Positions 12,705 to 58,926 of a stretch of 64,000 bases of DNA are shown piece by piece. The DNA is from Neoechinorhynchus agilis (lineage: Eukaryota; Animalia; Acanthocephala), in contig CM121342.1 in the NCBI GenBank assembly GCA_051530055.1, positions 5,889,489 through 5,953,488 of the forward strand, given 5' to 3'. The stretch's first letter is position 1, and every line of letters begins with the position of its first letter. The notes under the pieces were generated by a model. That model was not told where the DNA came from. It made no database searches and saw nothing but the letters and a program-made list of their open reading frames with translations. Both the position numbers and the translations under genes were made by a program.

Positions 12705-12812
12705 TCAATGTTCGAATCCGTTACCGCCGATGATGCAAAACTAAAGGGGGGCGAAATACTGCCTCTCCTCGGGAGGTATCTGAGAATCCGGAGGGATTCT
12801 TACAAACTTACA
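12705..12812 (+). mobile_element. SINE-like copy 2, 5'-truncated and internally deleted
   Basis: B-box gttcgaatcc at 12710; ggggggc-GAA-ATAC joined directly to gcctctcctcgg-GAGGTAT-C-tgag; the CTGATGA strand is deleted. Confidence 0.7.
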
Positions 12813-12930
12813 ACCGTACGGTCTTGGGCATTGAGCGCAGACCAGCGCTTTCTCAGACTGAAATCGCTGGACTGTGTGTCCATTCGGCCGTGTATGGAAT
12901 AATAAAAGTGAAAAAAGAATAATCTTTTCG

Positions 12931-15232
12931 TGGCGAAGCGTACTAAAGATCAAGTCTTTCGTCCATCGGCGATGATCGAATATGTGATGTACGTCCTTAC
13001 TATTAACCAACACAAACTTCCTTCTATTGCACGTCAGGCATACGAAAGAAGTCGTAGCCACATACCTCCCCTCCAGTGTCGACGCATTAATCCGTTCCGT
13101 CAGCTTGAAAACGTGTTGGTATTTTGACTTGACGACCGATGCGAGTCGTCTGTTGCTTGGGAGAAGGTACTGAAGGCAGCGGCGGGTAGTGATTTGGGGT
13201 ACCGGGGCATGGTCATTGGTTATCGTGATCACGTGAGCCTTCTTTAATCGGTCCACCGAGACGTTATCTTCTTTACCATTGATTTCGATCTTCATCGCAT
13301 TGGCCCCGGTCTGTGGGACCTTGTACAGACCATCGTACTGACAGGAGAGCTGGGGTTTGATCGCGTCGATCTTGACAAACACAAACTTGGCGTTTTCGAG
13401 GGGAGCCGGCACTCTGGTCGGGGCGTTCCTGCTGGGATCCGTTGTCCACCTGGGAGGCATGGGCATCAAGTCCATCAGTTTGTCTCTCAGTCGGGTCAAA
13501 CAAAGGCTGAGTATCACCGATGCCGCGTCCTGGACGAACTCGCCAGGTAGTCGCAGTGATGATCTGTAGACCAGTTCGGCCGGGAACAACCCAGATCTTC
13601 CTTGAGCAAGGTCTGGAGCTCTCGGAGGACCCAAGGCAGGTCTTTGGCCATCTGAACTGCAGGTGAAAGCGCTCGATCATGCCGTTGTCCTGCGGGTAGT
13701 AGGCGGTCGCACGGTGGACGTATACTCCGAGGGCCTCCCCGAGGTAGTTCCAGATGCCAGAGGTGAACTCGTCGTAACTCCTAGATGTCCTGGAAGCCTG
13801 CGACGACTCGGGGTCCCACGGGACTGTGTTGTTCTTGGTCTTGGGGTCGACGTCAAGAACTCGGCGCAGGAGGACCATGATCTTGGCGGCGTCAAGAAGG
13901 AAGCGATGGTAGTAGTTGACTATCCCCAGAAAACGCTGTAGCTCGATCATCGTTGAGGGCTTGCAGCGACGAGGATGTCGTCGATGTAGACGAAGACGTA
14001 CGGTAGGTCGCCCAGGACGGAGTAAATGGACCTTTGGAAGGTCTGGGCGCTGTTGCGTAAACCGAAAGGCATCCGAGGGTACTCCGAAAGGCCGAATGGG
14101 GGGTGATGATCGCCGTTTTTGGGATGTCCTCCTGGGCGACTGGGATCTGGTGGTAGCCCTTGACCAGGTCGATATAGGAGAACACCGAGTATCCGTGCAA
14201 TGCTGGACCTGATGTCGAGCGGCCGAGTCGAACCTTGGTGTGAGGACGGCAGGGTACTTGAGGAGCAGAGCCTCGAACTGGCGCCTCCAAGGGAATAAGG
14301 GTAGTTGGTGAAGTGGCGACGAGTCTCTTGACCTGCAGGTCGATCATCAGTCCGACGTTTCGGAGGAAGTCGGAACCAGAGATGGCGTGTCTGACGTCGG
14401 CAATTATGAAGTTTCACGAGTATCGGGCCCGGCTTGCGAGGTTGAGCGATAGTCTTTTGGTGCCGTAAGTCTGGATAGGACGATGCTGATTTGCGCCCCT
14501 GTGTCGACGAGGGTAACCAACAGATGCCTGGTACTGTCCTCGGAGGTGCTTTGCCTTTGTGATGTTGTCGCATCACGGCCACTCGGGCTTGTTTGGTCGA
14601 TCGCGCAAGCGGTGGTGCCGCCCGTTATTTGAAAAAAGAATTTGTCTGCGACTTCGGCCAGGGAGGTCAGATTGAGAGTATCGATGGAGGCGACCAGTTC
14701 ACGGACTTTCGTCGGCAGCTTGTTGATAAGGTGGTGTCGAAACAGGGGATTAGTGGCTGGGTACGAGTTCTGAGCGTACAGCGCCAGCGTGCGCTCCAGG
14801 AGGCGCGAGGGGGTGTCGTCCTTGATTGTCAGTTCCACGATCATCTGCATCCGTCGGAATTCGGGAACGCTGGAACCGATCGCCGGGCGGTGGGAGGTTG
14901 ACGACGAAAATCCTTAGTCGGCCCAGGGTCTCGGCGTTCAGGGTTGTGTATACATAGTCTTACTTGGTTTAGTCCTGGAAGATCATTCGGAGGTTGAATG
15001 TGGCCTCGACTTGGGAGAACCGCATTGCGCGCTTCCGGGTGAGTTCGGGTCTGTTCTAATGTTGTCGTTCGATGGTTGCTTGTCTTGCGATTTCATCTTT
15101 CGTCGGGGTCGTCACTAATTTGGCGTCGATGCGTACTAAAGATCAAGTCTTTCTCCTTTCTGCGATGATCGAATATGTGATGTACCTCCTCTTCTGTTGC
15201 ACGTAGGGCATCCGAAAGAAGTCGTAGCCATA
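12931..15232 (-). mobile_element. Internally deleted Ty3/Gypsy LTR retrotransposon
   Basis: LTRs 15121-15232 and 12931-13062; degenerate Trp-type PBS next to 15120; PPT ggaggggaggta next to 13063; fragments of gag, protease (LVDTGAQIS), RT ([23 protein letters not shown]) and integrase (TAYYPQDNGMIERFH). Confidence 0.9.
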
Positions 15233-19777: not shown

Positions 19778-21840
19778 AAAAAGGGCGACGAAAGTGGAAA
19801 CGTTTTCCATAAACGGTTTTTCGGAGATTTTCTTACGATCTCAATTTTGTATTATTTTTTCTTTTTTTTGTTAGCGAATTATTAATTTTTATTTGATAAT
19901 TTTCGGCCTTCGCCATAGACCTTCTTCGGTCTATCTAAAATTCACCCAAGAAACACTATAATAAAATTCATTTTCTATCCAAAAAGGGCGACGAAAGTGG
20001 AAACGTTTTCCATAAACGGTTTTTCGGAGATTTTCTTACGATCTCAATTTTGTATTATTTTTTCTTTTTTTTGTTAGCGAATTATTAATTTTTATTTGAT
20101 AATTTTCGGCCTTCGCCATAGACCTTCTTCGGTCTATCTAAAATTCACCCAAGAAACACTATAATAAAATTCATTTTCTATCCAAAAAGGGCGACGAAAG
20201 TGGAAACGTTTTCCATAAACGGTTTTTCGGAGATTTTCTTACGATCTCAATTTTGTATAATTTTTTCTTTTTTTTGTTAGCGAATTATTAATTTTTATTT
20301 GATAATTTTCGGCCTTCGCCATAGACCTTCTTCGGTCTATCTAAAATTCACCCAAGAAACACTATAATAAAATTCATTTTCTATCCAAAAAGGGCGACGA
20401 AAGTGGAAACGTTTTCCATAAACGGTTTTTCGGAGATTTTCTTACGATCTCAATTTTGTATAATTTTTTCTTTTTTTTGTTAGCGAATTATTAATTTTTA
20501 TTTGATAATTTTCGGCCTTCGCCATAGACCTTCTTCGGTCTATCTAAAATTCACCCAAGAAACACTATAATAAAATTCATTTTCTATCCAAAAAGGGCGA
20601 CGAAAGTGGAAACGTTTTCCATAAACGGTTTTTCGGAGATTTTCTTACGATCTCAATTTTGTATTATTTTTTCTTTTTTTGTTAGCGAATTATTAATTTT
20701 TATTTGATAATTTTCGGCCTTCCCATAGACCTTCTTCGGTCTATCTAAAATTCACCCAAGAAACACTATAATAAAATTCATTTTCTATCCAAAAAGGGCG
20801 ACGAAAGTGGAAACGTTTTCCATAAACGGTTTTTCGGAGATTTTCTTACGATCTCAATTTTGTATTATTTTTTCTTTTTTTTGTTAGCGAATTATTAATT
20901 TTTATTTGATAATTTTCGGCCTTCGCCATAGACCTTCTTCGGTCTATCTAAAATTCACCCAAGAAACACTATAATAAAATTCATTTTCTATCCAAAAAGG
21001 GCGACGAAAGTGGAAACGTTTTCCATAAACGGTTTTTCGGAGATTTTCTTACGATCTCAATTTTGTATAATTTTTTCTTTTTTTGTTAGCGAATTATTAA
21101 TTTTTATTTGATAATTTTCGGCCTTCCCATAGACCTTCTTCGGTCTATCTAAAATTCACCCAAGAAACACTATAATAAAATTCATTTTCTATCCAAAAAG
21201 GGCGACGAAAGTGGAAACGTTTTCCATAAACGGTTTTTCGGAAATTTTGTATAATTTTTTCTTTTTTTTGTTAGCGAATTATTAATTTTTATTTGATAAT
21301 TTTCGGCCTTCGCCATAGACCTTCTTCGGTCTATCTAAAATTCACCCAAGAAACACTATAATAAAATTCATTTTCTATCCAAAAAGGGCGACGAAAGTGG
21401 AAACGTTTTCCATAAACGGTTTTTCGGAGATTTTCTTACGATCTCAATTTTGTATAATTTTTTCTTTTTTTGTTAGCGAATTATTAATTTTTATTTGATA
21501 ATTTTCGGCCTTCCCGTGGACCTTCTTCGGTCTATCTAAAATTCACCCAAAACACTATAATAAAATTCATTTTCTATCCAAAAACGACGAAAGTGGAAAC
21601 GTTTTCCATAAACGGTTTTTCGGAAATTTTAATAATTTTTCTTTTTTTTTAGCGAATTTAATTTTATTTGATAATTTTCGGCCTTCGCATAGACCTTCTT
21701 CGGTCTATCTAAAATTCACCCAAGAAACACTATAATAAAATTCATTTTCTATCCAAAAAGGGCGACGAAAGTGGAAACGTTTTCCATAAACGGTTTTTCG
21801 GAGATTTTCTTACGATCTCAATTTTGTATTATTTTTTCTT
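19778..21840. repeat. Tandem satellite, ~203 bp unit, ~10 copies, with a hammerhead-like motif on the minus strand
   Basis: gggcgacgaaagtggaaacg at 19783, 19986, 20189, 20392 and onward; minus strand of each unit reads ga-CCGAAGA-a-ggtct-atggcga-aggcc-GAA-AATT-A-tc. Confidence 0.95.
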
Positions 21841-22105
21841 TGATCCCGAGCGATGGTGTGAGTGATTTCATGACATTTCAAAAATAACACGTTAATTTGT
21901 TAATTAATTGATTTATTTGATGGCCTTCGCGTACGTCTTCTTCATCAGCTTGTTGTTTCGCAAGTTTTTAAATATTTGGGTTGGCAAAAATAAATGAATT
22001 ATTGATAATTCTCGCCGTCGAAAAAAAGTTAAAATGATGACCATCTTTACAATTGTATAATTACTTTATTGTTGTTGTTTTTTAGATTTTAATTTATTTA
22101 TACAT

Positions 22106-22158
22106 GGGTTGAATTTTAGATAGACCGAAGAAGGTCTATGGTGAAGTCCGAAAATTAT
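22106..22158 (+). repeat. Single inverted copy of the 203-bp satellite's hammerhead-like segment
   Basis: gggttgaattttagatagaccgaagaaggtctatggtgaagtccgaaaattat closely matches the reverse complement of the unit segment. Confidence 0.85.
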
Positions 22159-22281
22159 AATTCTAATTTTAGAAAGGAAACGGACGACATATCGATTTTC
22201 TTGAACACCAATTTTTTCGATCAAAATTACACAAATTCTCACACGATCAGCCTTTAAATTTTTTTTAAAAGATTCGAAGCC

Positions 22282-22845: not shown

Positions 22846-23836
22846 ATGAATGAGTCGGACAAGCGAAATATGAATGCCAAAACGGGAAATGCATTCAATA
22901 AGGAACGAATGGAAGCATGGATGAAACGAAGAATGGAAGCTAAGAAAAGAAACCGTCCACCGAAAGCGATTAAGTTGGACGCTGACCTGTAAGATCCAAC
23001 AAAATTCATCTATTGATCACGGCATTTTAGTTATTTTTTGTGATTTAATCGAACCACGAGGTTTCGTTGAAATGAACATTTTTAAAATCGAAATTAAGAA
23101 AAAAGGCATATATCGGTTACGAGTTTTCGGACAGAAGTACGATTTCCAATCTAAACAATCATCAACCGTAAAAAAAACATCTTCAGTTTTTCATTTGCAT
23201 TTTAATTCTGACTATATTCAAAAATTTTGTGTGATTATGATTTCAAATGTCTACAAAAATTAAATTTTTAAAAATATATCTTCAGTTTTTTCTATGCAAT
23301 GAAATTGCTCATCTTAAGTTCCGATCTTATTGTCTAGAAAGTTTATTTCTCGTTTCTTTGATTTTCTGAGAAAATACCGAGTTTCTCAGTTTGATTTCAG
23401 AAAGCAAAGGCATCAAAAATCTATACGAGCGTGGACTTGCTATAAATGCATTTAAAATTTCCGAGGACGGTGAAACAAGACATGGAAAAGAACTTGATGA
23501 TTTTGTTGAAATAATGAAGGTCTATGAGCATTGGGCTCGTTCATTGTGCTCAAGATATTCATTTGAGGAGGTTATAGAACGTGTTGAACGTTTGGGTGAA
23601 AAGAAGATTGTGAAGGTTTCATCACATTTCTGAAGATTAATATTTAAAAAACTCCATAATAGTCTTATATGAATAGATTCAGGAGTGGAACAAGTGTTGA
23701 AATAAATGATGGAGGCGACATCCAGGACTTGATCGAAGCGGAATTCGGTCCTCGTGAAGACACGGCCGATATTGAACAATATTTTGACATTCCTAATGAG
23801 GCCGATGATAACGACGACGACGCCAACATGGAATGA
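22846..23836 (+). CDS. TIPIN: TIMELESS-interacting protein (Swi3 domain), 3 exons: 22846-22988, 23390-23615, 23663-23836
   Basis: Spliced KLDADLLISESKG...YEHWARSL..RYSFEEVIERVERLG.KK.V..YMNRFR fits Swi3; both introns are GT-AG and phase-compatible. Confidence 0.88.
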
Positions 23837-24145
23837 ATTTTAAATAATAATGAAAACAAATTCGGCTACTAATGATTCTTTTTTAAGACGCGTGAATCGT
23901 GGTAAAATGAGACCTTGAAACTTCTACAACATGAAAAATGCCACATTCGAAGACGGCGTCCAAATTCTAATTTCTTTTTTATTTAGCATCATTAAACAAC
24001 TAGATTCTATTCTACTTTTTTCTTTGCTTAAATTATTCCCTAAATATTGAATCTACTAATTAATGGACGGCATCTTTGTCGCGTACTCGCATTGTTTAGT
24101 ATAGATTTTACCCAAAAACGTTCCCGAGTACAATGTTTTTGTTTT

Positions 24146-24182
24146 GTCCGAATTTTCGCCGCTCCACGGCTTCTTCAGGGAC
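24146..24182 (-). ncRNA. Minimal type I hammerhead ribozyme, intact core
   Basis: GTCC-CTGAAGA-A-GCCG-TGGAG-CGGC-GAA-AATT-C-GGAC. Confidence 0.85.
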
Positions 24183-24295
24183 TCTCCCTCGCTCTGAAAA
24201 GGTCAGAGAAGTGATAAACTGTCTGACAATTCATCTTTCCGATTGATTGACCCATCAGTTGGTCCTCCGCGACCCTGCTACTCCTCCACGACCTT

Positions 24296-24332
24296 GTCCG
24301 AATTTTCGCCGCTTCACGGCTTCTTCAGGGAC
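24296..24332 (-). ncRNA. Minimal type I hammerhead ribozyme, intact core
   Basis: GTCC-CTGAAGA-A-GCCG-TGAAG-CGGC-GAA-AATT-C-GGAC. Confidence 0.85.
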
Positions 24333-25361
24333 TCTCCCTCGCTCTGAAAAGGTCAGAAAAGTGATAAACTGTCTGACAAATCCTTCCGATTGATTGATGA
24401 CCCAACAGTTGGTCCTCCACGACCCTGCTACTCTTCCACGACCTTGTCCGAATTTTCGCCGTTTCACGGCTTCTTCGGGGACTCTCCCTCGCTCTGAAAA
24501 GGTCAGAAAAGTGATAAACTGTCTGACAAATCCTTCCGATTGATTGACCCAACAGTTGGTCCTCCACGACCCTGCTACTCTTCCACGACCTTGTCCGAAT
24601 TTTCGCCGTTTCACGGCTTCTTCGGGGACTCTCCCTCGCTCTGAAAAGGTCAGAAAAGTGATAAACTGTCTGACAAATCCTTCCGATTGATTGATTGACC
24701 CATCAGTTGGTCCTCCACGACCCTGCTACTCTTCCACGACCTTGTCCGAATTTTCGCCGCTTCACGGCATCTTCGGGGACTCTCCCTAGCTCTGAAAAGG
24801 TCAGAAAAGTGATAAACTGTCTGGCAATTCATCTTTCCGATTGAGTAACTCCTCCGTTGGTGCCTCCGACCCTGCTACTCCTCCGCGACCAATAATCAGA
24901 GCCTCGGCAATGGAAAGATCTACAGGATCAGATGCCCTGTAAAGGCTGGGCTAACATTATTGTGGTGGTTAGCAAAATTGGTGGCCAAGGGTAGGGAGAG
25001 TCCCCGAAGAAGCCGTGAAACGGCGAAAATTCGGACAAGGTCGTGGAAGAGTAGCAGGGTCGTGGAGGACCAACTGAGTCATCAATCGGAGGTTTGTCAG
25101 ACAGTTTATCACTTTCTGACCTTTTCAGAGCGAGGGACCAACTGATGGGTCACTCAATCGGAAGGATTTGTCAGACAGTTTATCACTTTTCTGACCTTTT
25201 CAGAGCGAGGGAGAGTCCCCGAAGAAGCCGTGAAACGGCGAAAATTCGGACAAGGTCGTGGAAGAGTAGCAGGGTCGTGGAGGACCAACTGTTGGGTCAA
25301 TCAATCGGAAGGATTTGTCAGACAGTTTATCACGTTTCTGACCTTTTCAGAGCGAGGGAGA

Positions 25362-25398
25362 GTCCCTGAAGAAGCCGTGGAGCGGCGAAAATTCGGAC
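25362..25398 (+). ncRNA. Minimal type I hammerhead ribozyme, intact core
   Basis: GTCC-CTGAAGA-A-GCCG-TGGAG-CGGC-GAA-AATT-C-GGAC. Confidence 0.85.
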
Positions 25399-26005
25399 AA
25401 GGTCGTGGAAGAGTAGCAGGGTCGTGGAGGACCAACTGATGGGTCACTCAATCGGAAGGATTTGTCAGACAGTTTATCACTTTTCTGACCTTTTCAGAGC
25501 GAGGGAGAGTCCCCGAAGAAGCCGTGAAACGGCGAAAATTCGGACAAGGTCGTGGAAGAGTAGCAGGGTCGTGGAGGACCAACTGTTGGGTCAATCAATC
25601 GGAAGGATTTGTCAGACAGTTTATCACTTTCTGACTTTTCGAGCGGGAGAGTCCCGAAGAAGGTGGTTGGGTGGGGGGGGGTGTGGTTAATCGGAAATTT
25701 GAGTTATCAGTTTCTGACCTTTTCAGAGCGAGGGAGAGTCCCGAAGAAGCCGTGGAGCGGCGAAAATTCGGACAAGGTCGTGGAAGAGTAGCAGGGTCGT
25801 GGAGGACCAACTGATGGGTCACTCAATCGGAAGGATTTGTCAGGGCAGTCGTGGTGTGAGAGTGGTCTGAAAAGCCGTGAGCGGCGAAAATTCGGACAAG
25901 GTCGTGGAAGAGTAGCAGGGTCGTGGAGGACCAACTGTGGGTCATCAATCGGAAGGATTTGTCAGACAGTTTATCACGTTTCTGACCTTTTCAGAGCGAG
26001 GGAGA

Positions 26006-26042
26006 GTCCCTGAAGAAGCCGTGAAGCGGCGAAAATTCGGAC
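26006..26042 (+). ncRNA. Minimal type I hammerhead ribozyme, intact core
   Basis: GTCC-CTGAAGA-A-GCCG-TGAAG-CGGC-GAA-AATT-C-GGAC. Confidence 0.85.
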
Positions 26043-26354
26043 AAAATAAAACATCGTACTCGGGAACGTTTTAGAAAAAAATCTATACTATCGAATCAAC
26101 TGTTAAAATTCAATATATTTGTCATTATTAATGAAGAAATTAATACGGGCGACCTCAACGGAAAGGCCAAGGTTCAAAATTCATGGTTTGAAGAGCGAAA
26201 ATACTCGGTAACGCAAAAAAGAGCGTTTCGATGATTTATCATTCCCGATTGATCAGTTGGTGGATTTCCTCATTAACTTTGTTCAACTCTATTTTTGTAA
26301 GTTGCGTATGTATTTTTCAGGACCCTGAAGAAGTAGTAAAACTCCGAAGGACTG

Positions 26355-26398
26355 CAAACATACTGATGATGAACCCGGCGAGTTTCGAAACGTTTTTA
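26355..26398 (+). ncRNA. Degenerate minimal hammerhead motif of another family
   Basis: CTGATGA-T-gaac-ccggcga-gtttc-GAA-ACGT-T; stem I poorly paired; homologous to 48721-48815. Confidence 0.5.
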
Positions 26399-26694
26399 AT
26401 CGAAAAAATTATTTGCCAGGTAAAGACGTCTAAACGTTCAAAATAAACAGTTGTTTTCAACCGCTTAAATTGCTAAAATGAGGACAATCGAAAAGATAGA
26501 GAAATCAGTCGATAATCCACCAATTGATCAATATTCGGTTGAGCAAACCGATTCTCGTCGATATGATAAAATACACTGCAAACCTAAAGAGACTAAATTG
26601 CGCGTGTGTATTTCAGGAATTGCAAAGTTTCCGATTGACGCTTTTCAAGAGTACACGACACCGGATTTATTCTTATTAAATCCACAGACAAAGG

Positions 26695-27992
26695 TTATAC
26701 AGGTCCCGGCAAATCGATTAGTAAACGACTCACTCTCAGTCTCAGTCTCCTTGACATCATCAACAATATTAATGGGTTCAGAGATGCTCCCAATGAGTTT
26801 ATAAGTCTGATTATCGCGAGCATCGAGAGAAAATTGCCAGTACGCATGCCATTGCTGTATCCTGGGACGAATACTGCAAACGCAAGACATATTTGGTATG
26901 GCAGATTTGTGAAGAAAAAACACGAGATCATTGCAATTGTAAGATGTACGATTTGTTTAACATTTTTATTTTTAAAATGTTGACGTTTGATTTGTCTATG
27001 GCACGGATGAGCGTTCTCATTGAGACAATGGTTCTTCGTTTCCGGTTCACCGATGGTTGGATTCTTCAAACTAATCCGTCTACTTGGCAAGAATATAGCT
27101 GGGGAAATGTTGGTAGTTGGTGATTTTAGAAAAAGATGGCAATACGACAATTCGTTCCCAACTGATTGAGTGTTTGATAAAGAGTGTTTTGAAAACGAGC
27201 GGATTTCTCTGATGATTGCCGAATAGATGATGAGCAAAGACATAGCGGGCATTATGAAGAAAACGACAATCATTGAGGTGAGGTAGATTTTGGACCATAA
27301 AGTGTCGACTCGGTGTAGACATTCCGTTGAGTTATAAATTGCACCAGTTGCAATTATTGGTAGACTTGTTAAGCTTGAGATTATCCATACGAGCACGAGG
27401 AGTTTGTTTACTTGATTGCAGAAAGTTTTCATTTGCTATTAAAAGAAAGCGATTATTCCAAGAAACAAATTATATAGAACATACCGTGAATGACTTGAAG
27501 GCAATTAGATATCGGACAAATGCAATCAACATAATTGATCCAGCCGATGCATGAACCACTGTGTACTCTATAAAAGGTGTCACTACGCCTAAATCGTACT
27601 TAAATGGCAGTTTTGTTAGCCGACAGAAAAAACTCACATATAAAGTGTCCGAATCGCCAGTTGAAAGGAGAAAAGAGGTCATGAAGTGCGATTGGGACGC
27701 AGTAGAGGAGTGAGAGAAGGTCGGCGACACAAAGGTTCTTTATGCACAGATCAATAGTGCTAAAGATGCTCATTGATTTTCGTTTGGATTCTGTGACGAT
27801 TATTAGTAGAATGTTTGAAGGGACACCTAGAATCAATATTAAGAGTGCCGAGTCGTCGTTTTAGAAGTCGCTGGACGACAAGGCACGCTGGAAAGCGTAT
27901 ACACATATGACAGTGTTCCGTACCGTCAACGGGACTGGGTCAAGGTCGGGGAAATTCGATATATTGAACAAAAACGGAGCTTCTGCTTGCAT
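26695..27992 (-). CDS. Rhodopsin-family peptide GPCR (ETH/TRH/neuromedin-U receptor-like); in-frame TAA inside a hairpin in TM1
   Basis: ATG at 27992 with an NIS glycosylation site; LG.PSN (TM1), NLCVADLL (TM2), W.FGHFIC, PFIEYTVVHAS..I..IAFVRY (TM3), FF.TNLPY (TM6), SLNPL (TM7); 49-nt GT-AG introns 27637-27589 and 27484-27436; 3' end may be spliced further. Confidence 0.8.
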
Positions 27993-32103: not shown

Positions 32104-35100
32104 TCACCGATACCTATCGGATGCATACTTGAACGGTTGATCAACATGGTCATCAATGTTAAAGGTTAGAGGGAATTGTCTCTCTAATCGAACGGGTGCT
32201 TTTCGATGTTCGGCCCAGCCAATAAAACACATTTTAAACTCCTCTGGTTCTCGGGTTTTTCCAGTAAACCGAATTTCTCTTTGTTCGCCAATAGAACGAA
32301 TGTACACTTGTGCGCTTTTGAACGCCAATCGAAGCTCGGTGTCGGTGCAGCACGGTCCAATCCATATGAACACTATTGAGCCATTGTCCAGAAGGTATAC
32401 ATCGTCGTCCAGTAAGCAATCCTGGCAGAAATTGGGATAGAATTCCGAAACCTGGTAGAATCCGCGACCGTTTGAACACCGGAACAACCGAACTGAAGAT
32501 GGCATGGGAGGCCCAATGGGCAGAGGGCCATTCAAAGCAAGCCAGAAGAACATTTCCGGCTCGTTTCCTTGAGCAATGTATTGGACAGTGTGTTCCGGTG
32601 CTTGGAAGATGAAATGAGCGATTTGTTGACACATAAACGAGTCCTCGTGTGGAACTGATTGTCCCGTCCAAACATAGACGATGTCGTTAGCCGAAGGGAA
32701 ACGAACCCGGACGACATAACAGCGGTCTTCGTGCAATTGGCTTACCGAAATGATGGTGGTCGAATAAAAGAAGAATGTACCAAATAAAAGGATAATTCGA
32801 AAAGAATTTTAAGAAAAAGTTCCATTTTCGCACCAGCACTTCTCGACATTATCAATTTGAATAAGTCGCATATGAAGACTCGAGAATTGGCTTTTCCTAA
32901 ACTCAAATAAGTCTGAATTCTGACCGGTGGTGGTGTACGTTGTGTTGTTCATCAAGACAAACTTCCGTTTGAATAGAGCCATAAAACAGTCACTTTCCAT
33001 TTGCTGAAATAATCTGACAACCTGCAAATTTTTAGATTTTCTTCCAAGAAGATCTTCGATCTTATGAAGTAATTGCGTTCTGAAATGGAACCAGATTTTA
33101 TTCGTCCGACATCTTCGTCCTTGCCAAAAATAGATAATAACCGAGCTCTCAGAGCAAGTGTCCTCGTAACGTTCATCGCTGACGACATGTCGCTCATAGG
33201 TGCTGAGAGTTCCATGGTCAAGACGGAACGAGCTATCAACATGGACCGGAATGTGATAAGTGATCATGTAAACATAGCAGAGATGGGATTGGAATATACC
33301 ATGAGATTCGGGAGGAACAGGAACCGATTTGCATTGTGAATCTATACAAATAGCACCGATGCTTTTGATCTGATCATGTTGGTCATTGATGAATTCGTCT
33401 GCTTGGTCAAATGGGATTACTTGTGGCCTCGGTGACCTCAGGACTCGAAGGTCCGATTTGAGTTTTCGATGTGGGTTACTGAGCACGGATCGTCTTTGAT
33501 GAAAAGAAAATGTGGTTTGTTGTCCTAACCGCAGTCTAAGAAAAGTGGATCTCAAGTTCTTCAATAAGAGATCCACTCTGACAATAAGCAGCGGATCTTC
33601 ACATCCTTCAACCACATTAACTACTCGGACACCCTCTGGACATCCACTGACGTGCTCAACGAGGTTCTGAGCGGCGATCTTTACGTATCGGGATGACTGT
33701 TTCCCGATCCACACATAAACTTCGGTCCATAAATCAATGAGATAAACGCTTTTGGATTGAAACGTAAAAGGAGCCTTGACTTGAGATATGAATATTTTTC
33801 CTAGGTCATTTTGGACCTCATAAATGGTCATGGATCCGGGCCTAACTAAATCAAGTCTCATCACGGGTATTTTCAGAGACATGAGAGTGTTTTTCAGTTC
33901 GGTTCTAGACCGAATTTCTCGGAATTTAGAACTGATTTCATTGGCTAATAGACGTGATTGAGATTTGAGAAGTGCACTGCAATTGTTTGAGTTATAGAGT
34001 ATAAGTTCTGACCCCGTGTTGATCAACAACGACGAGTTTTCCTTTGTCCTAAGTGTCATCTTTTGATCTACTTTATTTGATGTAAGAGGAATATATGCTG
34101 CCAAAAGTCTCTTATTATGCTGATAATTACCGTCCAAAGTAAGAAGGAATATCTGTAACGATTGTTCATTCATGTGCGATTGGGATACTTGCACCATTGC
34201 TGAATTCGTTTCATTTCCTTCGATCACAATCACGTGTTGTTCGTTAAAAATGGCCCAAAACTCTTCGGATTCTTCATTCTGTCTTTCTCGCTTACATTGG
34301 CATCGTTGTTTAAGAGATTGTCGGACTGTTTGGGCTAGATGAGTGGCGTGAATAGCCACGCAAGCTCTTTTGTCAATACTCGCATCGTTACCGATCCAAT
34401 AATGAACACTTTGTTGGTCCTGAGTTAGTACAATATAACACTCACCACTAAGAAGGTAGTTTCCAAAGTCGTTAACCAAAACGGGTTCAAAGTTCACTAT
34501 TCTCCAAATTGAGAACTTGCCTGAAATTGGGATTTGATCAAAAGTACTCGACGTACTTGAAGAAGCCTTTTTGTTATTATGATCGATTGGTTTATGGCGA
34601 TGAGATCGCCTTGACGGCTGCTGACCTCCTCCTATCTTAGACGACCCTCCAATTCTATCGTTCGCACAATTTTCTTCATCATTAAAGTCAATGTTTAAAT
34701 ATAACGATTGGTTCAACTTAGGACAGACCCGACGAGATCCCAGACGCGGAGCATCACGCTCGTAGCAAACATCCATCCGATAAATTCGTTTTCGGAACTT
34801 CTGAAGGAAATCAGGACTTCTTAGCAAATGATTTACTTTGATTTTCACAAGAGATTCACATCGTGCCAAACATAAAGGTAAAGTTTCGAGCATGTTTCCA
34901 GCAAGGAACAAATGTTCGAGGGAACGAAGTCGGTCGAGTGCAAGCGGAAGTCCGTCGAGTTTTATAAGGTTATGACTGAGGTATAGTCTTCGTAGACGAG
35001 GAAGATCGCATATTTCAATGGGAACACTTTGGATTTTGTTACCGGAAAGATTAATGGCTTCAAGACGAGTCCACCCACGACCTATTCTGAAAGTAGTGAT

Positions 35101-35999
35101 TCGATTACCACTTAGATCGATGATTTTGATTTCTTTAAAAAAGAGGACAAATTCTGGGATTTCGGGAAGACCGTTGCCGTTCAGATCTATTCGACGACAA
35201 TTAAGAAATCTTAATGAAGTTGGGAACGAAATGTTTGAAGGAAGACAATCGTTCAAACGTAGATCAGAGATGTGTTTGAAATGCGTTAGGGCGTCTACAC
35301 TCGAGAATTTCTCGAATTTCCACTTTCGAGAGATCCTCAACTTAGCTGGTTTTTATGAAGACTGTTTTTTCCGATGAACAAGCATCTCAGAGAAATCAAT
35401 TCTGGTTCAGGTAACGTTTCGATTTGATTTCCTTCGAGGTTCAAGGACACCAATGACATGAGTTTCATGAGTGCCTTTGGAATGAGCCTTATGTGATTGT
35501 GGGCGAGATTAAGAATAGTAAGTTTAGACGAAAGTGAGCAGATCTCGAGTGGAATGTAGAATAGGTCGTTGTGAGAGATATCGAGTATTTTGAGATTTGA
35601 CAAAGCGTTCGGGTTTATCAGATGGAGAAGGTCTTCACTTTTGAGTTGGTTGTGCCGGACCAATAGTTGAGTTAGCGAGCATGGAAGAGGAGATCCAGAA
35701 GGATGTCGTAAAGCGTTGTGGCTCAGATCAAGCTTTTGAAGGTGAACTAAAGCACTTAAGCATCGAGGGATGTGTGTTAATCGGTTATGGTGAAGACTGA
35801 GTTCCCGCAGTAAGTGGAATCGGTTGAGTTTATATAGATTTGTGGTTCGATTGGATAAATCGAGACTGTACACAAAATCGGTAATGTTTTGAAGCGAGGA
35901 ATCTGTCTGGTTCATCGTGTTTAGACAATGTCTCGCATAAGACTGGGTTTGAATGTCTGAGAGATCTGAAGAATTGGGAGAAATGTACTTGAGCATCAA
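32104..35999 (-). CDS. FLII: Flightless-I homolog (N-terminal LRRs plus gelsolin repeats); likely start M at 35915
   Basis: LRR series then gelsolin segments (IWRIVNFEP, YWIGNDASIDKRACVAIHA, YFWQGR, VYVWTG, RLFRCSNGRG, DDVYLLDNG..VFIWIG); GT-AG introns 35341-35295 (47 nt) and 32839-32741 (99 nt) join the three ORFs in frame. Confidence 0.9.
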
Positions 36000-38420: not shown

Positions 38421-40532
38421 ATTGATTGTTTTCGCTAACGAAATTAAGGTACAAGATTGTGTGCCTCTCCGAAAACAATCGGATCACTAAAAATAAAAAA
38501 TCATCTTAATTTCTTCGCAATATAAAACAACCACAAAATATGAACAATTAAATCTTCAAACAATAATCGTAAAAAAAACAAATTATACCGATTATTTTTC
38601 ACGAAAAAAAAGAGAATGCAACAATTGCAAAAGCATCGTTCTCTAAGATTGGTACTAGTCTTTTTTTTCGGAGAATCGATATTTTCGAGAGTTCTAAGAA
38701 CGCCTATAAACAACAGCAAAAACACTTCAGCATCGGAAACCACGGATCGGTGCTCAATTGGACCAAAGGAAAACAGAGGTCATTTTTATAAGAATGAAAT
38801 TCTGACCTGGAAGAAATTCGCGTGACCTCGTCGAAGTTGTGACGTATTCAATGTTAGAGAAGTTTCAAAGCGATTTTCTCTTGACCGTTAAAGAAAAGTT
38901 CATCTATTTTTGTGGGTTTTTTACTTGGTGTTCAGTTTTTTGGATGCAATGGAGGATTTTTTTGTCTTTAAAATCGAATTCTTTATTAAAGAAGAGGAAC
39001 AAAGTTGGAGATGAAGCGTTTTTTTTGATTGAGCCAAGAAGCGTTTTCCTCTTACTCATTCCTCGGTTAGTCTTGGAAATTTGTCATCTTGATGAGTTTA
39101 AGATCGAAATAAATTTTAAAGATTTAATCTCCAAAAAAAAAGAGCATATCTTTCTTCATTTGTCAAAGACTCGAATTTTGTCTTCATTTTAGATTTTGAC
39201 CAATTGTTCAATATTGGTGCTGCTCTCGGCAACCATCAACATCACGATTTATTCATCATTTAAACATATAAAGATATTTTTAGACAGCAATCGAGACAAC
39301 CAGCGCGGAGCAGAAAGTCTTCAGCTCTCCGGCCCAGGGAAACGGTAGAGACTCCGAGTGTTTGAGTCTTGATGGGAGTAACCATCACGATTTTTTAACA
39401 TCCTTCAACAAATCGGAGGCTCAAATTCTTTGAGCTAAAAAGAATTTATTAAATTCGATTAATTTCGGCCAATCACAATCTTGTACGCGCTTATAAAGGT
39501 TTCTTGTATCTCTGAAATCAATCAACCACTTTAATGTAGAATAATAATGCAAAAACGGAGAATTCAATTTTTAGTAGAAAACTTACGACCAACTTTGTGA
39601 TAAACGTGTACAAGATTGTGCCGCCGAAACCAATTGGAATCAATACAACACTCGTAATCGCTCTTTTTTCCCATTGGCCAATCTTCTCGCTCTCGGATAT
39701 CATAAAAACTGAAATGAAAATGAGGTAATCGCCAACCACCATCTTTCCTTCATTCGACTGGACACAGCCGCTCTCTAATGGTTTTGTTGTTGCTTATATT
39801 AACGGAAAGCGAAGTACTAAGAATGAATCATCTTTTAAATTGATTAATTTTTCTACTATATAAAAATATTATATCATCCGTGGTTCCACTTTAGCTTAAA
39901 AGCGCCAACTTTCTACATCTTTTCTATGGGTTTCTAGAAGCGAAAAGCAATTATAGATCAGCGCTGCCGGACGATAATGCCATTTTCGCCATTGGGACAA
40001 AATCTCTACTGAAGATTTTTATAAGTGGTTTAGATCAAGATTGTTGTCGTTTATATAATGAGGCTTAGCCCTTATCTTTCGAATAATCAATAAAAGTTTC
40101 CTAGGTTTTTTTAAGACAAACGAGTTGATGTCCACCGACGCTTCGACCACAAAAAATTGCGATTTTATGTAAAAGAAATCGTTTTTCTCGATTTAATTGA
40201 ATATTGACCAATGGCGCTGCGTGCTCGGATCGTTGTTACTTTAGAATGTTTTATGAAATATTTTAGTGATTGCGCACGAATTAAGCTGACATTGAGGCGA
40301 TTCCTTTTTTTATTACGGCCCAAATCAATCCAGCAAATGAACGAATGTCTTTTCAAAAAGTGTAAATTTCAAAAACAAAATATTTTATCCGGATATTTCG
40401 AAAGAGAGAGAGGAAAACCGAAACTCCATTCGGGTCAGTTAAAAAGATTTTAGTTGTATGGCCGAGAAGCATTATGATCACTACCACACTTTCCCAACTC
40501 TCCTGAAAGATTTTATGTTGATGTTTACTTCT

Positions 40533-40885
40533 GTTTTACTCCAGATTTATTATCGAACGGAAAATGGGTGTTTTATTTCTTGCTTCAAATTTTCGACGCC
40601 TTGCGTCTTCGTCAGGAAGCTTTTCTTCGGTTGTCTGAAAAGGAATCAGAGGAGGGCAACAACGGACCGACTTTTCGAGCCTCTGCAAACTTCTTCGCGA
40701 CTCTGGAGAGGATAAAGATTTTGGAGCAACGGATCATTTTTCTACGGACAGCGTTGCCCTCCTCTGATTCCTTTTCAGACAACCAAAGAAAAGCTTCCCG
40801 ACGAAGACGCAAGGCGTCGAAAATTTGAAGCAATAAACAAATAAAACACCCATTTTCCGTTCGATAATAAATCTGGAATAAAACA
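40533..40885. repeat. ~130-bp inverted repeat arms with ~86-bp spacer, each arm carrying a hammerhead motif
   Basis: 40533-40665 is nearly the reverse complement of 40752-40885. Confidence 0.9.
40582..40620 (-). ncRNA. Minimal type I hammerhead ribozyme, intact core
   Basis: GCTTC-CTGACGA-A-GACGC-AAG-GCGTC-GAA-AATT-T-GAAGC; 5-bp stems I and II; partner at 40793-40831 (+) has CCGACGA. Confidence 0.85.
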
Positions 40886-41156
40886 TCAGGGTGTTGGGAA
40901 AAGAGGCTTTCCATAATATTACTTCTGTTTTACGTTTTTTATAACAGTTTCCTCTTTTGTACTTTAAACTTTCATGTTTTGAATTTAAACCACCCGTAAT
41001 TATTGTCACAGTTTGCTCTTCGATCTGTGAAAGTTAAAACTCGTCGTTGAAAACAACATAGAACGAGGATATATTATTTTGAAAGATGATAACAAAACTA
41101 TGAAAAATCTATTGTATGTCCTCGTTTTTGCTTTCCAATACCGACATTTTGATAAC

Positions 41157-48720: not shown

Positions 48721-48815
48721 AAAGTACCTCGCCGGATTCATCATCAGATTGCTTGTTATTAATAGACGCAAACTGGCGATGAACACGACGAGATTCGAAA
48801 CGTTTTTAATCGAAA
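48721..48815. repeat. Divergent inverted pair of degenerate hammerhead-family fragments
   Basis: Minus strand CTGATGA-T-gaatccggcgag (core 48741-48747); plus strand ctggcga-t-gaac..ttc-GAA-ACGT-T (48773-48804); same family as 26363. Confidence 0.55.
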
Positions 48816-49042
48816 AATTTAAATAATAAGTCGACTGTTTTTGTCTCGTTCTTTAAACACCATTGAGTTCAGAACTTACTTCTGTAATTATTCTTTGTTG
48901 ACTCTTCTATAAATTATTATCATTCGACTGGTTCCGAATTTTCAGCTAAAATAATTTATTCTAAGTTTTAAGTGTGACCTTTTTCGTGGCTGATTATTTT
49001 CCCTGGGCACACAGCTCACCGATATCTGGGTCGAGGATCCGT

Positions 49043-49645: not shown

Positions 49646-49732
49646 GGCTCCGTAGCTCAGTCGGTTAGAGCGCCGTACTTATAGGCAGTGCGAGCGATGC
49701 GGATGTCGCGGGTTCGAGCCCCGCCGGAGCCA
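49646..49732 (+). tRNA. tRNA-Ile(UAU) with 13-nt intron (49684-49696)
   Basis: Acceptor stem GGCTCCG/CGGAGCC, D-arm AGCTCAGTCGGTTAGAGC, anticodon arm CCGTA-CTTATAA-TGCGG after intron removal, T-loop GGTTCGAGCCC. Confidence 0.95.
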
Positions 49733-50182: not shown

Positions 50183-50304
50183 ATTGTCAATTGAATTCGA
50201 ATTTTCGACCCTTTCGTAGGTCTTCATCAGGGCGAATAAAACACTTCAACAATATCCTGACGAAGACCCACGAAAGGGTCGAAAATTCGAATTCAATTGA
50301 CGAT
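50183..50304. repeat. ~49-bp inverted repeat with 24-nt spacer; each arm holds a hammerhead core
   Basis: Plus: CTGACGA-A-GACCC-ACGAAA-GGGTC-GAA-AATT-C (50257 onward); minus: CTGATGA-A-GACCT-ACGAAA-GGGTC-GAA-AATT-C; stem I imperfect. Confidence 0.75.
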
Positions 50305-50808
50305 TGTTTAAAACAAAATAAGCATTTAAGCGAGAGACTTAATATCCAAAACTAACGATTCATTTGAAAAATAGGCTCCACATTACGAATATTTGACTCT
50401 TTAAAGCTCGTATAATATCGACGGCTCTTTTTATTCAAATTAACAAATTTTTACAGTGGACCCTAAAAAACAAATCTACTTCAATTTTGTTTGGTTAGGA
50501 ATCTGTGTTTGTTTTCATTTAAATTGCATGGATCTCGTTTTTCCATTGAAGGAAAATGTGCAAAAATTCAACTCAGGTAAAAAAAGGACTTTAATAGATT
50601 CGCTTTTGAGCATTGCTAAAACAAATATGTTTGGCAAACTCCTTTTTTTAATGAGACTCAATTGTCTCCTTGTCACTCCATTGGTGGCATAAGTCACGGC
50701 ATGACACCACTCCGTAACAGCTTTTTTCGCCGCAATCCCTTTTATATTTATTGCTCAATTCGTGCAATCTCAAGAAAGTCGGAACTACATCTTTCTCTCA
50801 AAAAACAA

Positions 50809-56369: not shown

Positions 56370-58926
56370 CTAATTTTCCTCGCTTCCTTTTTTGTTTTCC
56401 TTTCGCGCCGAATTCTGCGCTGATTCAGCAGTCAAATTGTTTTCTTCTTTTAATTCCTTATCTTCCTTTGATTCTAATTTCATATCGCCACCAGCAGAAC
56501 CAACTGGAGCGCCACTTTCCTTATTGGATTTATTATTTTTATCACGGCCAGCAGACTCTTGTGCAGAATATTCTTCTTTTGGCTTGTTTTTATCCTTCTT
56601 TGACTTTCTCTTCTTTTCCTCGCCAGCTGATTCGGGGGCAGAATCTCCCTCTTCCTTTGGCTTGTTTTTATCCTTCTTTGACTTTCTCTTCTTTCCCTCG
56701 CCGGAGGATTCGGGACCAGAATCTCCCTCTTCCTTCGACTTCTTTTTATCCTTCTTTGACTTTCTCTTCTTTTCCTCACCGGAGGATTCGGGGGCAGAAT
56801 CTCCCTCTTCCTTTGGCTTCTTTTTATCCTTCTTTGACTTTCTCGTCTTTTCCTCGCCAGCTGATTCGGGACCAGAATCTCCCTCTTCCTTTGGCTTCTT
56901 TTTATCCTTCTTTGACTTTCTCTTCTTTCCCTCGCCGGAGGATTCGGGAGCAGATTCTCCCTCTTCCTTTGGCTTCTTTTTATCCTTCTTTGACTTTCTC
57001 GTCTTTTCCTCGCCTGCTGATTCGGGAGCAGAATCTCCCTCTTCGTTTGGCTTCTTTTTATCCTTCTTTGACTTTCTCTTCTTTCCCTCGCCGGAGGATT
57101 CGGGAGCAGAATCTTCCTCTTCGTTTGGCTTCTTTTTATCCTTTTTTGACTTTCGCTTCTTTCCCTCGCCGGAGGATTCGGGAGCAGAATCTTCCTCTTC
57201 GTTTGGCTTCTTTTTATCCTTCTTTGACTTTCTCGTCTTTTCCTCGCCTGCTGATTCGGGAGCAGCATCTCCCTCTTCCTTCGACTTCTTTTTATCCTTC
57301 TTTGACTTTCTCGTCTTTTCCTCGCCTGCTGATTCGGGAGCAGAATCTCCCTCTTCCTTTTTCTTTTTCTTGTCCTTCTTTGACTTTCTCTTCTTGTCTT
57401 CGTCGGCAGATTCGGGAGCAGAATCTCCCTCTACCTTTGGCTTCTTTTTATCCTTCTTTGACTTTTTCTTCTTGTCTTCGTCGGCAGATTCTGGGGCAGA
57501 ATTTTCATCAATCTTTGCTTCCTTCTTTTCCTTCTTCGCTTTTCCCGTTTTGTCCGGCGGGACCGATTCGTCTTTCGCCTTGATTTTCTTTTTGTCCTTT
57601 TTCTTTCCTTTCTTTATTTTTTCGTCTCCAGACGATGCCTTATCAGAAGAACCTTTCTTTTTTCCTTTTGACTTCTTCGATTTCTTGTCTTTATCTTGGT
57701 CGGAATCAGTACTTTTAGAAGTTTGGCTTAAACTCTCATCGGCTTCGCTGGACTCAGCTTCGTCCGGTTTCGCGGTAATTTTGCCTTGAGTCCATTCGCC
57801 GGTTTCAAATGAGTAGGTAAATTTCGTTTCCGGTTCCGGGGATGGTGAATCCGGGTCCTCCGATGGTTTCGGTCTATCCGTCGAATAAATGTATTCGGTC
57901 TCGAAAATGAGATTCGTGTTTTTGATGTCATATTCTGGAATATTCGTCACAAGTTTCCATTCATCCTTTTCTTCGCTTCCACCCTTTCGCACGGTGCTGA
58001 TGTTTAAGGAATAGACACCCGGAACGGAAGCGCCCGGGCCGTCCGGACCGAACTCTCGTCCACCCATCGCATAAATGTTTTCGCCATCGCAAGCGACCAT
58101 GACATTACAAACGGCCTGAGGAAGATCCGATAAAACTTGCCATCGTTTTCCTTCAAACGGTAAAATTGAACACTTTGCTGAACCGTACGGTTTTCCCCCT
58201 CTCAGCGCGTACCCGCCGGCGACGATACATTCATTTCTGTCGGTCACTGTAACTCCGCACCAAGATTGAGACGAGGGCAAATCCGGAAGCTGGTGAAATT
58301 CGTCGGCGTAGATGTCGTAGCGAAAACAAGATTTTAGTGGAACGTTATTGAACGTCATCCCGCAGATTATAAAGATGTTTCCTCCATTGGCACCAATACC
58401 GAAATTGATGCGACCATCCGGAATGGGTTTTATGGGTACCAACTCCTTTTTGCGAACCAAATATTTCCAATCGCGTTTTGGTTTATGCCGCCGTTTCTTT
58501 ATTGGATCAAATAGATATCCACCTATTTTTCGAGGGAAAAAAATTAGATCAATCGTTTTTAATGTCAACTTACCGAGACAATAGACCGCCGATTGAGTAC
58601 TGACAAAAATCGTTTTTTTCCTAATCTCCTTTCGACGAACCAAATTATAACACTCGTTGCATTCAGCCTCGATGACAGCCGGATCTGGACGCAAAATATT
58701 GATTTCTTTTTCTCAGCAACAACAATCAATGCGTACTCACCTCTGTCATTGTCCGCCGATGCAATAAAAATCAGCGCACGAAGTTCGTTGATTGTTTCTT
58801 GTTCCTCCGGTTTTAAAATTCCTACCTAAAAAAGGATAAGTGTTTTTTTCTCCTTTTTTAGCAAATTTCTCTTACAAGCGTCTTTGGGCTCAAACGTTGA
58901 GCGAAATCTTCGGCTGCTTCAAACAT
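56370..58926 (-). CDS. Kelch-repeat protein with long K/E/S-rich repetitive C-terminus, exons 58926-58876, 58825-58741, 58684-56370
   Basis: Kelch blades (IFIICG..RYDIY.DEF..LPDLP; IVAGG..W..L.DLP; IYAMGG); 50- and 56-nt GT-AG introns keep the frame. Confidence 0.8.
56560..57500 (-). repeat. Coding minisatellite, 78 bp (26 aa), ~12 copies
   Basis: EEGDSAPESAGEEKTRKSKKDKKKPK repeated; the overlapping long plus-strand ORFs are its antisense shadows. Confidence 0.95.

Follow-up and report, generated by a model that had tools for sequence, protein, structure and literature searches.

Hammerhead-bearing elements related to the locus

Penelope-like elements (PLEs) carry minimal hammerhead ribozymes: helix I measures 4-5 bp, helix II has an unpaired base on its 5' side, and helix III, which is small and palindromic, works only as a dimer. 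These motifs have low activity in vitro and come in pairs whose members lie 100-700 bp from each other on opposite strands (Cervera and de la Pena, PMC4209133). PLE insertions form partial tandems, often with an inverted 5'-truncated copy at the 5' end and with a 30-40-bp tail at one end (Craig et al., PMC8557442). The purified PLE enzyme of the anole cuts and extends both DNA strands at AT-rich sites (Frangieh et al., PMC11167929). Its reverse transcription starts at two internal sites whose spacing equals the tail, with the main start 85-92 nt after the hammerhead cut, and ribozyme cleavage is not required (PMC11167929). PLEs make up 8.9% of another acanthocephalan genome (PMC8557442). Here we analyse a palindromic hammerhead array in the acanthocephalan Neoechinorhynchus agilis, within 64,000 nucleotides of contig CM121342.1 (assembly GCA_051530055.1, positions 5,889,489 to 5,953,488; hereafter the window). 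The array, at 24058-26088 of the window, is probably a single insertion of a non-autonomous PLE derivative without an open reading frame (ORF).

The other closely related systems are the retrozymes that lack long terminal repeats (non-LTR retrozymes), which are non-coding, intergenic, tandem type I hammerhead repeats with quoted units of 150-450 bp, a motif in each unit and a proposed dependence on PLEs (Cervera and de la Pena 2020; Li, Clavereau and Pollet 2026 preprint). Animal retrozymes in the literature combine extensive self-pairing with a low G+C content (PMC7229834), and the preprint linking retrozymes to PLEs (Li, Clavereau and Pollet 2026) makes no mention of inverted twins or tails. 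Both PLE derivatives and retrozymes are kinds of element that are already known.

Two further groups of repeats share parts of this plan. Newt satellite 2, Schistosoma Sm-alpha and cave-cricket pDo500 are short tandem or dispersed type I hammerhead repeats in which a weak palindromic helix III favours dimeric cleavage. Their helix I and helix II loops interact and their palindromic helix III is GC-rich, whereas at the N. agilis locus helix III is the all-A/U sequence AAUU and helix I has only 4 bp. Foldback class II elements, such as FB and Galileo of Drosophila, have long inverted arms of tandem subrepeats with unequal copy number, and end in true terminal inverted repeats with fixed short duplications.

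Two opposed arrays of monomers

Two opposed arrays of 145-151-bp monomers occupy 24058-26088, with the ribozyme sense strand facing outward on both arms. A search of the whole window with the pattern CYGAAGAAGCCG-N5-CGGCGAAAATTC/GGAC (the slash marks the predicted cut; up to 3 mismatches) returned 11 hammerhead-like motifs, and none in 100 shuffles. The minus strand carries five of them (24146-24776), the plus strand six (25004-26042). The palindromic helix III sequence AAUU is present in every one of the 11 copies. The tandem, outward-facing design of minimal type I hammerheads with a 4-nt palindromic helix III, described in an earlier note on this DNA, is supported. That note had also counted four perfect ribozymes, with CCGAAGA in most others, and the pattern scan agrees: the CTGAAGA core is exact in 4 of the 11 motifs (at 24146, 24296, 25366 and 26010), and the other seven have CCGAAGA, one of them with an additional second change. 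The structure-aware scan recovered the intact motif GUCC-CUGAAGA-A-GCCGU-GGA-GCGGC-GAA-AAUU-C/GGAC at 24146-24182 (minus strand), with the other canonical copies at 24296-24332 (minus), 25362-25398 (plus) and 26006-26042 (plus).

We split both arms at the predicted cleavage site AAUUC/GGAC, read in the ribozyme sense. The left arm then consists of four full minus-strand monomers of 147-151 nt (24150-24299, 24300-24449, 24450-24596 and 24597-24747), which are 91-99% alike and each end in a hammerhead-like motif, and one diverged, partial monomer at the inner end (24748-24888), whose 5' side is joined to a different module (motif CCGAAGAUGCCG...). On the plus strand, splitting gives about seven monomers, two of them malformed or garbled. 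This arm begins with a copy cut inside the monomer, of which only the hammerhead part is left (24991-25032), and continues with some 6-7 monomers at 25033-26038, including an internal 75-bp duplication (25067-25212) and the two garbled stretches. These counts agree with the five or more minus-strand and about seven plus-strand monomers seen earlier, the latter with an uncertain copy number. TRF gave periods of 150 and 297 bp for the left arm and 147 bp for the right arm.

The arms are 94-99% complementary over stretches of up to 297 nt, and the best monomer identity between them is 98.6%. As had been noticed earlier, they are no simple mirror images: copy number and variant order differ. Both arms have the same 3' ends and different 5' truncation points, which meet at about 24990/24991. 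The tandem junction GGACAA/GGUCG lies 6 nt past the cleavage site, and monomer G+C is 50-52%. A blastn search with the locus found no further copy of the monomer in the window, and the locus holds no ORF beyond short repeat-generated frames. Because an ORF for a reverse transcriptase (RT) and GIY-YIG endonuclease is absent, we class the element as non-autonomous.

Ends of the element and the target-site duplication

Sequence support was assessed over 23300-26900 with one Illumina whole-genome run, one set of DNA contigs and two sets of RNA-library contigs. Illumina depth is about 13 in the single-copy flanks, 90-320 in the tails and about 130 in the centre, so all modules of the element are multi-copy in the genome.

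Directly past the last cleavage site of each arm lies a 50-nt 3' module, at 24100-24149 on the minus strand and, inverted, at 26039-26088 on the plus strand; the two are about 84% alike, and the left one is multi-copy in the reads. The right module reaches about 25 times single-copy depth, 208 reads diverge into varied flanks beyond it, and depth is back at the single-copy level from 26083-26088 onward. The right limit, at 26088, lies 50 nt after the cleavage site. On the left side only, multi-copy sequence continues into a 42-nt extension of the PLE tail type (24058-24099, minus strand), which ends at 24058, or 92 nt past the cleavage site. The left end (24026-24146) has about 7 times single-copy Illumina depth, the majority of reads differ from the assembly letters at 24062, 24068 and 24080, and 50 reads split into varied AT-rich flanks immediately before 24058. 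Opposite-strand joints in the reads (24096/26081 and 24106/26079) show that the extension is contiguous with the tail in other copies also.

These limits, which come from the reads on the left side and, independently, from where the inverted tail stops on the right, are bordered exactly by a 13-bp target-site duplication, TATTGAATCTACT at 24045-24057 and TATCGAATCAACT at 26089-26101, whose copies match at 11 of 13 positions. Among random pairs 2031 bp apart, a fraction of 0.00015 matched as well at exact positions and 0.0022 with a slack of 4 nt to either side. The earlier note had described one ~50-bp inverted tail ending in TA at both outer ends. The shared tail stands, but not as the left limit of the element, and the TA at its ends is not a target duplication, since the true limits are 24058 and 26088 with the 13-bp duplication around them.

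The same data bear on a foldback or miniature inverted-repeat element (MITE-like) reading, in which a transposase would have moved a class II element with GTATAGA...TCTATAC ends and a TA duplication. Such a reading was our initial guess, given the 50-bp terminal inverted repeat, the TA beside both ends and the tandem-repeat arms resembling those of FB and Galileo, and it was dropped in view of the extension in the reads and the 13-bp duplication. Multi-copy sequence runs 42 nt past the left TA, at one end only. The duplications here and at a second element (described below) have different sequences and lengths, 13 and 15 bp; the inner ends form staggered truncations, and the motif and tail geometry match those of PLEs. 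We therefore regard a foldback origin as extremely unlikely.

The centre is part of the element

Between the arms lies a stretch (24889-24990, minus strand) that might be taken for unique filler. It has no second copy in the window, yet its Illumina depth is about 10 times that of single-copy sequence. Contigs of other copies continue past 24988 with different sequence, so the centre is not filler but a truncated 5' part of the element, with the 5' truncation of the left copy near 24988-24990. Some other copies link this 5' module directly to a single monomer, through a joint of 24246, GTGCTA and 24881 seen in 19 reads and an RNA-library contig. In addition, 84 reads leave the shared hammerhead and tail at 24244 and enter one consistent other sequence (agreement 0.99), whose 30 nt are absent from the window; it may belong to a longer relative. 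The junction between the centre and the right arm is bridged by an RNA-library contig that spans 24949-25050 without mismatch.

A second element with the same plan

A structure-aware hammerhead scan of the whole window found only this family (family A) and one other pair, at 40620-40582 (minus) and 40793-40831 (plus). This pair belongs to a 379-bp head-to-head element with outward arms (element B, 40540-40918), flanked by a perfect 15/15 target duplication, TTACTTCTGTTTTAC, at 40525-40539 and 40919-40933. As at the first locus, the duplicated target is AT-rich. Element B has a 42-nt extension on its right side only, and the distances from cleavage site to element end, 50 and 92 nt, are identical in the two elements. 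Its motif is GCUUC-CUGACGA-A-GACGC..., with CCGACGA in the plus-strand copy.

A MAFFT alignment of families A and B runs through hammerhead, tail and extension. On this alignment we counted pairing in helix I, helix II and a stem that joins the tail (about +34 to +41) with the extension (about +65 to +72). Helix I pairs GUCC with GGAC in family A and GCUUC with GAAGC in family B; at helix II, an A precedes GCCGU paired with GCGGC in family A and GACGC paired with GCGUC in family B, and helix II is 100% paired. Over all three helices 93% of the cells pair, a share that drops to 21-45% on sliding the partners. Compensatory changes between the families affect seven pairs (two in helix I, one in helix II and four in the tail-extension stem), and the observed covariation score was matched by none of 500 shuffles. 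The 4-5-bp helix I, the unpaired base 5' of helix II, the small palindromic helix III and the pairing of motifs on opposite strands all agree with the published description of minimal PLE hammerheads (PMC4209133), and helices I and II are kept here by compensatory change.

With a covariance model derived from this alignment, a third pair that faces outward was detected at 50198-50353 (within 50183-50353), with GACCC/GGGUC as helix II and AAUU as helix III, the helix III sequence that element B and family A also have. Its cores are only 24 nt apart. This pair adds little on the ends of copies, since both of its members break off at the core and its arms lose their similarity about 17 nt past the cut. 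It lies about 500 bp downstream of a tRNA gene (49646-49732).

Two further observations concern hammerhead-like sequences in the window. A 203-bp satellite (19778-21840 and 22100-22165) contains a minus-strand motif with a CCGAAGA core and an extra A, GGUC/GGCC as helix II, AAUU and an almost unpaired helix I, which scores only 12-15 bits with the covariance model; a diverged plus-strand partner to its right gives an outward-facing layout again. A small hairpin, UCUGA-loop-UCAGA, stands about 15-20 nt upstream of the hammerhead, in the RNA sense, in both family A (24202-24216) and family B (40763-40779).

Element B is informative about how the twin arms of the larger locus arose. One alternative to a single insertion is that two members of the family inserted separately in opposite orientations, the second landing at or in the 5' end of the first. 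The divergence of about 16% between the tails, and the unlike variant order and copy number of the arms, are what two events would allow. PLEs tend to home into their own copies, and in vitro the PLE of the anole cuts the junction of its own terminal repeats (PMC11167929). The 13-bp duplication, in contrast, encloses the whole composite, as the 15-bp duplication encloses the whole of element B. Separate events would each leave a duplication of their own and none around the pair, so the composite-flanking duplications count against two insertions, which we consider unlikely.

The shared plan also speaks to a local inverted duplication of an ordinary hammerhead satellite, arising by fork switching or break repair and requiring no transposition. 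The 297-bp higher-order period and the high identity between arms fit the concerted evolution of such a satellite. This model leaves unexplained the shared 3' module that is not part of the monomer, a multi-copy extension on one side only, the duplication at the flanks, the abundance of copies in other surroundings and the recurrence of the plan in family B, which is unrelated in sequence. Such a duplication is very improbable as the origin of the locus.

Read and assembly support

Exact matches of short-read contigs cross the outer junctions on both sides (23909-24097, 23994-24147, 26052-26413 and 26043-26703). The interior of the right arm is another matter. Illumina depth there is 0 at 25599-25719 and about 3 at 25720-25961, compared with about 13 in the flanks, and the error-like stretches pointed out earlier are thus real weak spots of the assembly. 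Because 25599-25961 has no Illumina support, the copy number of the right arm is uncertain. For the N. agilis assembly, ONT R9.4 and Illumina reads were combined with MaSuRCA (PMC12690905), and unpolished stretches in the right arm fit such an origin.

Could the palindrome itself be an artefact, that is, a chimeric fold-back long read or a mis-join of the hybrid assembly? Tandem and inverted structures of PLEs are known to trouble assemblies (PMC8557442), the stretch at 25599-25961 is garbled, and the junctions are supported by short-read contigs only. Against these points, the outer junctions with their different unique flanks and the junction of centre and right arm are matched exactly in contigs of other libraries, the arms are not mirror images, a target duplication surrounds the whole, and the same plan occurs at 40540-40918 in well-behaved sequence. 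An artefact is accordingly very unlikely.

A joint between 24057 and 26122 appears in five Illumina reads and in one DNA contig of single-copy depth. It may mark an allele that lacks the insertion, but its shorter side covers no more than 22 nt, and the joint falls 20 nt past the position at which an empty site would be expected.

Probable integration as a Penelope-like element

We hypothesize that 24058-26088 arose in one integration event. The element RNA would have the order 5' module, body, minimal hammerhead and 3' module, with body and hammerhead tandemly repeated in units of 147-151 nt. A PLE reverse transcriptase and GIY-YIG endonuclease, supplied in trans, would cut both strands of an AT-rich target, and cDNA synthesis would be primed on both target strands and start inside the 3' module. 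The right-hand cDNA would start at a proximal site, 50 nt past the ribozyme cleavage site, and the left-hand cDNA at a distal site, 92 nt past it, which would give the one-sided 42-nt tail. Both cDNAs would stop early, at different points (about 24990 and about 24991), and the two 5'-truncated copies would be joined head to head. Filling in of the staggered cuts would produce the 13-bp target duplication. The palindrome would then be a by-product of integration, and the hammerhead an inherited PLE-type module of the family. The trans-acting enzyme, the priming on two strands, the ribozyme activity and the transcription are steps that we infer.

The likeness to PLEs extends over most of the structure. 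Like PLEs, the locus has a minimal type I hammerhead in a terminal repeat, tandem copies, an inverted 5'-truncated partner that produces outward inverted repeats, a tail at one end only (left here, right in element B), and a duplicated AT-rich target of variable length (13 bp with 11/13 matches, and 15/15 in element B). The two end positions resemble the two RT start sites of the anole element PAc, of which the distal one lies about 85-92 nt past the ribozyme cut (PMC11167929). The locus differs from PLEs in having no ORF with a telomerase-like RT and GIY-YIG endonuclease, in a repeat unit of 147-151 bp instead of several kilobases, and in a tail of 42 nt, slightly above the quoted 30-40 bp.

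The array is also retrozyme-like by layout, with tandem type I hammerhead repeats whose units, at 145-151 bp, fit the quoted 150-450 bp, a motif in each unit, and a non-coding, intergenic setting. Published retrozymes, however, mostly have canonical hammerheads with loop-loop contacts and highly paired circles of about 170-400 nt, whereas the motif here is of the minimal PLE type, mostly with C at position 4. The locus likewise departs from foldback elements in its extra 42 nt at one end, its 13-15-bp duplications and its inner ends, which look like 5' truncations of cDNAs. To our knowledge, the host group is new for such arrays, as is an array of 147-151-bp units with minimal, non-canonical hammerheads and a full PLE integration footprint. 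Nor do we know of an earlier case in which copy ends conserved at 50 and 92 nt go together with a covarying stem around the proximal one.

Several observations weigh against a single PLE-type insertion. The two copies of the 13-bp duplication differ at 2 of their 13 positions. The likeness of the tails is only about 84%, against up to 98.6% identity between monomers of opposite arms, a mismatch that implies either different source RNAs for the two cDNAs or arms homogenised later. When monomers are numbered from the 3' end, those of the right arm do not match their counterparts in the left arm, as would be expected if one template had served both cDNAs; the outermost right monomer matches the second left one. 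The GGACAA/GGUCG junction points neither to a circle-derived array nor to a simple end-to-start one. Assembly quality is poor inside the right arm, and the inversion is supported by short-read contigs only. The covariation, drawn from sequence comparison of just two lineages, is suggestive, not strong. Finally, the sole reverse transcriptase remnant in the window (12741-14582, minus strand) looks to be of the LTR/integrase type.

That remnant was considered as a possible autonomous PLE and rejected, given its integrase-type neighbours in Atlas and its weak RVT_1 and rve_3 matches, which indicate an LTR-type origin. It is frameshifted, and its C-terminal part resembles integrase C-terminal domains. 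The window as a whole contains no ORF of a PLE.

Ribozyme core and predicted activity

We scored the core on C3-U4-G5-A6-N7-G8-A9, G12-A13-A14, A15.1/U16.1 and H17 before the cut. All positions are satisfied in the four canonical copies, and the remaining 7 of 11 have C at position 4. C4 is also the majority state of the family in the reads (334 of 359 at 26011), and CCGA variants occur likewise in element B and in the 203-bp satellite at 19.8-21.8 kb. CpG decay was rejected as the cause of the recurrent C4/U4 difference, as CpG observed/expected is 1.29, with no depletion. The U4C change is reported to cut activity strongly in vitro, yet a viroid tolerates it in vivo (PMC3088659).

Helix II is 5 bp long here, compared with 7-8 bp in Schistosoma. 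Helix III would consist of four A-U pairs and is predicted to form only between two copies. Searches with Rfam gave no hammerhead match in the window at the gathering score, nor in 23900-26300 at E values up to 10; in our reading, motifs that lack a closed helix III would be unlikely to score well on the Rfam hammerhead models. A rod-like monomer fold was rejected, the 147-nt monomer having a minimum free energy of -39.8 kcal/mol compared with -39.9 for shuffles (z 0.03). With this value and its G+C of 50-52%, the monomer RNA is not the highly self-paired, low-G+C molecule described for retrozymes.

Published minimal hammerheads of PLEs cleave poorly or require protein (PMC11167929, PMC4209133). 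The hammerhead of this family probably cleaves weakly, only as a dimer or with the help of protein, and is probably not needed for insertion. Efficient self-cleavage and circle formation by these motifs are possible.

Expression and the silencing proposal

The element sits between convergent genes, a plus-strand gene with its stop at 23836 and a minus-strand 7tm_1 receptor ORF at 26695-27432. Judged from this arrangement, read-through from either flanking gene would give a hairpin RNA. RNA-library contigs specific to the locus have a depth of 3-7 and are unstranded, compared with a depth of about 80 at the neighbouring gene, and carry-over of DNA is possible; the libraries are poly-A-selected mRNA-Seq if they are those of PMC12690905. 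The upstream plus-strand gene has a 47-nt GT..AG intron (23614-23660), confirmed by RNA-library contigs at the depth of about 80.

The palindrome had been proposed as a possible retrozyme source and trigger of its own silencing. In its full form this proposal makes the locus an active retrozyme with a built-in brake, in which dimeric cleavage would yield circularised RNAs of 147-151 nt and a read-through hairpin of several hundred bp would feed small-RNA silencing of the whole family. The ideas of a retrozyme, of circular RNAs and of self-silencing are somewhat weakened by the canonical core in only 4 of 11 copies, the C4 majority, the fold z of 0.03 and a right arm that lacks the element's own 5' part. 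The hypothetical circles would also fall below the range of about 170-400 nt reported for expressed animal retrozyme RNAs. Since the twin layout is already known for PLEs, the palindrome needs no self-silencing design; it matches the ordinary footprint of PLE integration (PMC8557442, PMC11167929) and recurs at 40540-40918. We consider the braked retrozyme improbable, and favour the single insertion of a PLE derivative.

Neighbouring features

To the right of the element, at 26320-26450, lies a separate multi-copy repeat with about 15 times single-copy depth and read breaks at 26348, 26362 and 26400. It contains strings resembling CUGAUGA...GAAAC and has a related copy at 48769-48821 (87% over 53 nt). 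Host genes recognised by Pfam are all on the minus strand: in addition to the 7tm_1 receptor, they encode a protein with LRR and gelsolin domains (flightless-like, 32104-35999), a Kelch-repeat protein (56370-58694) and an auxiliary subunit of NatA (61192-63397).

Implications for acanthocephalan elements

Published support for the mobilisation of animal retrozymes by PLEs consists of co-occurrence and of sequence likeness to PLE terminal repeats. The locus described here and its neighbour at 40.5 kb add integration footprints, namely twin copies, a 42-nt tail, ends at +50 and +92 and target duplications of 13-15 bp, which match the in vitro behaviour of the purified anole enzyme. The locus also flags a weak spot in the assembly. 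If our reading is true genome-wide, PLE machinery would, in thorny-headed worms, use a conserved 3' stem-loop module to copy multimeric hammerhead arrays as linear RNAs. The palindromes of such arrays would be by-products of integration, and the ribozyme core may drift (C4) without halting the spread of the family.

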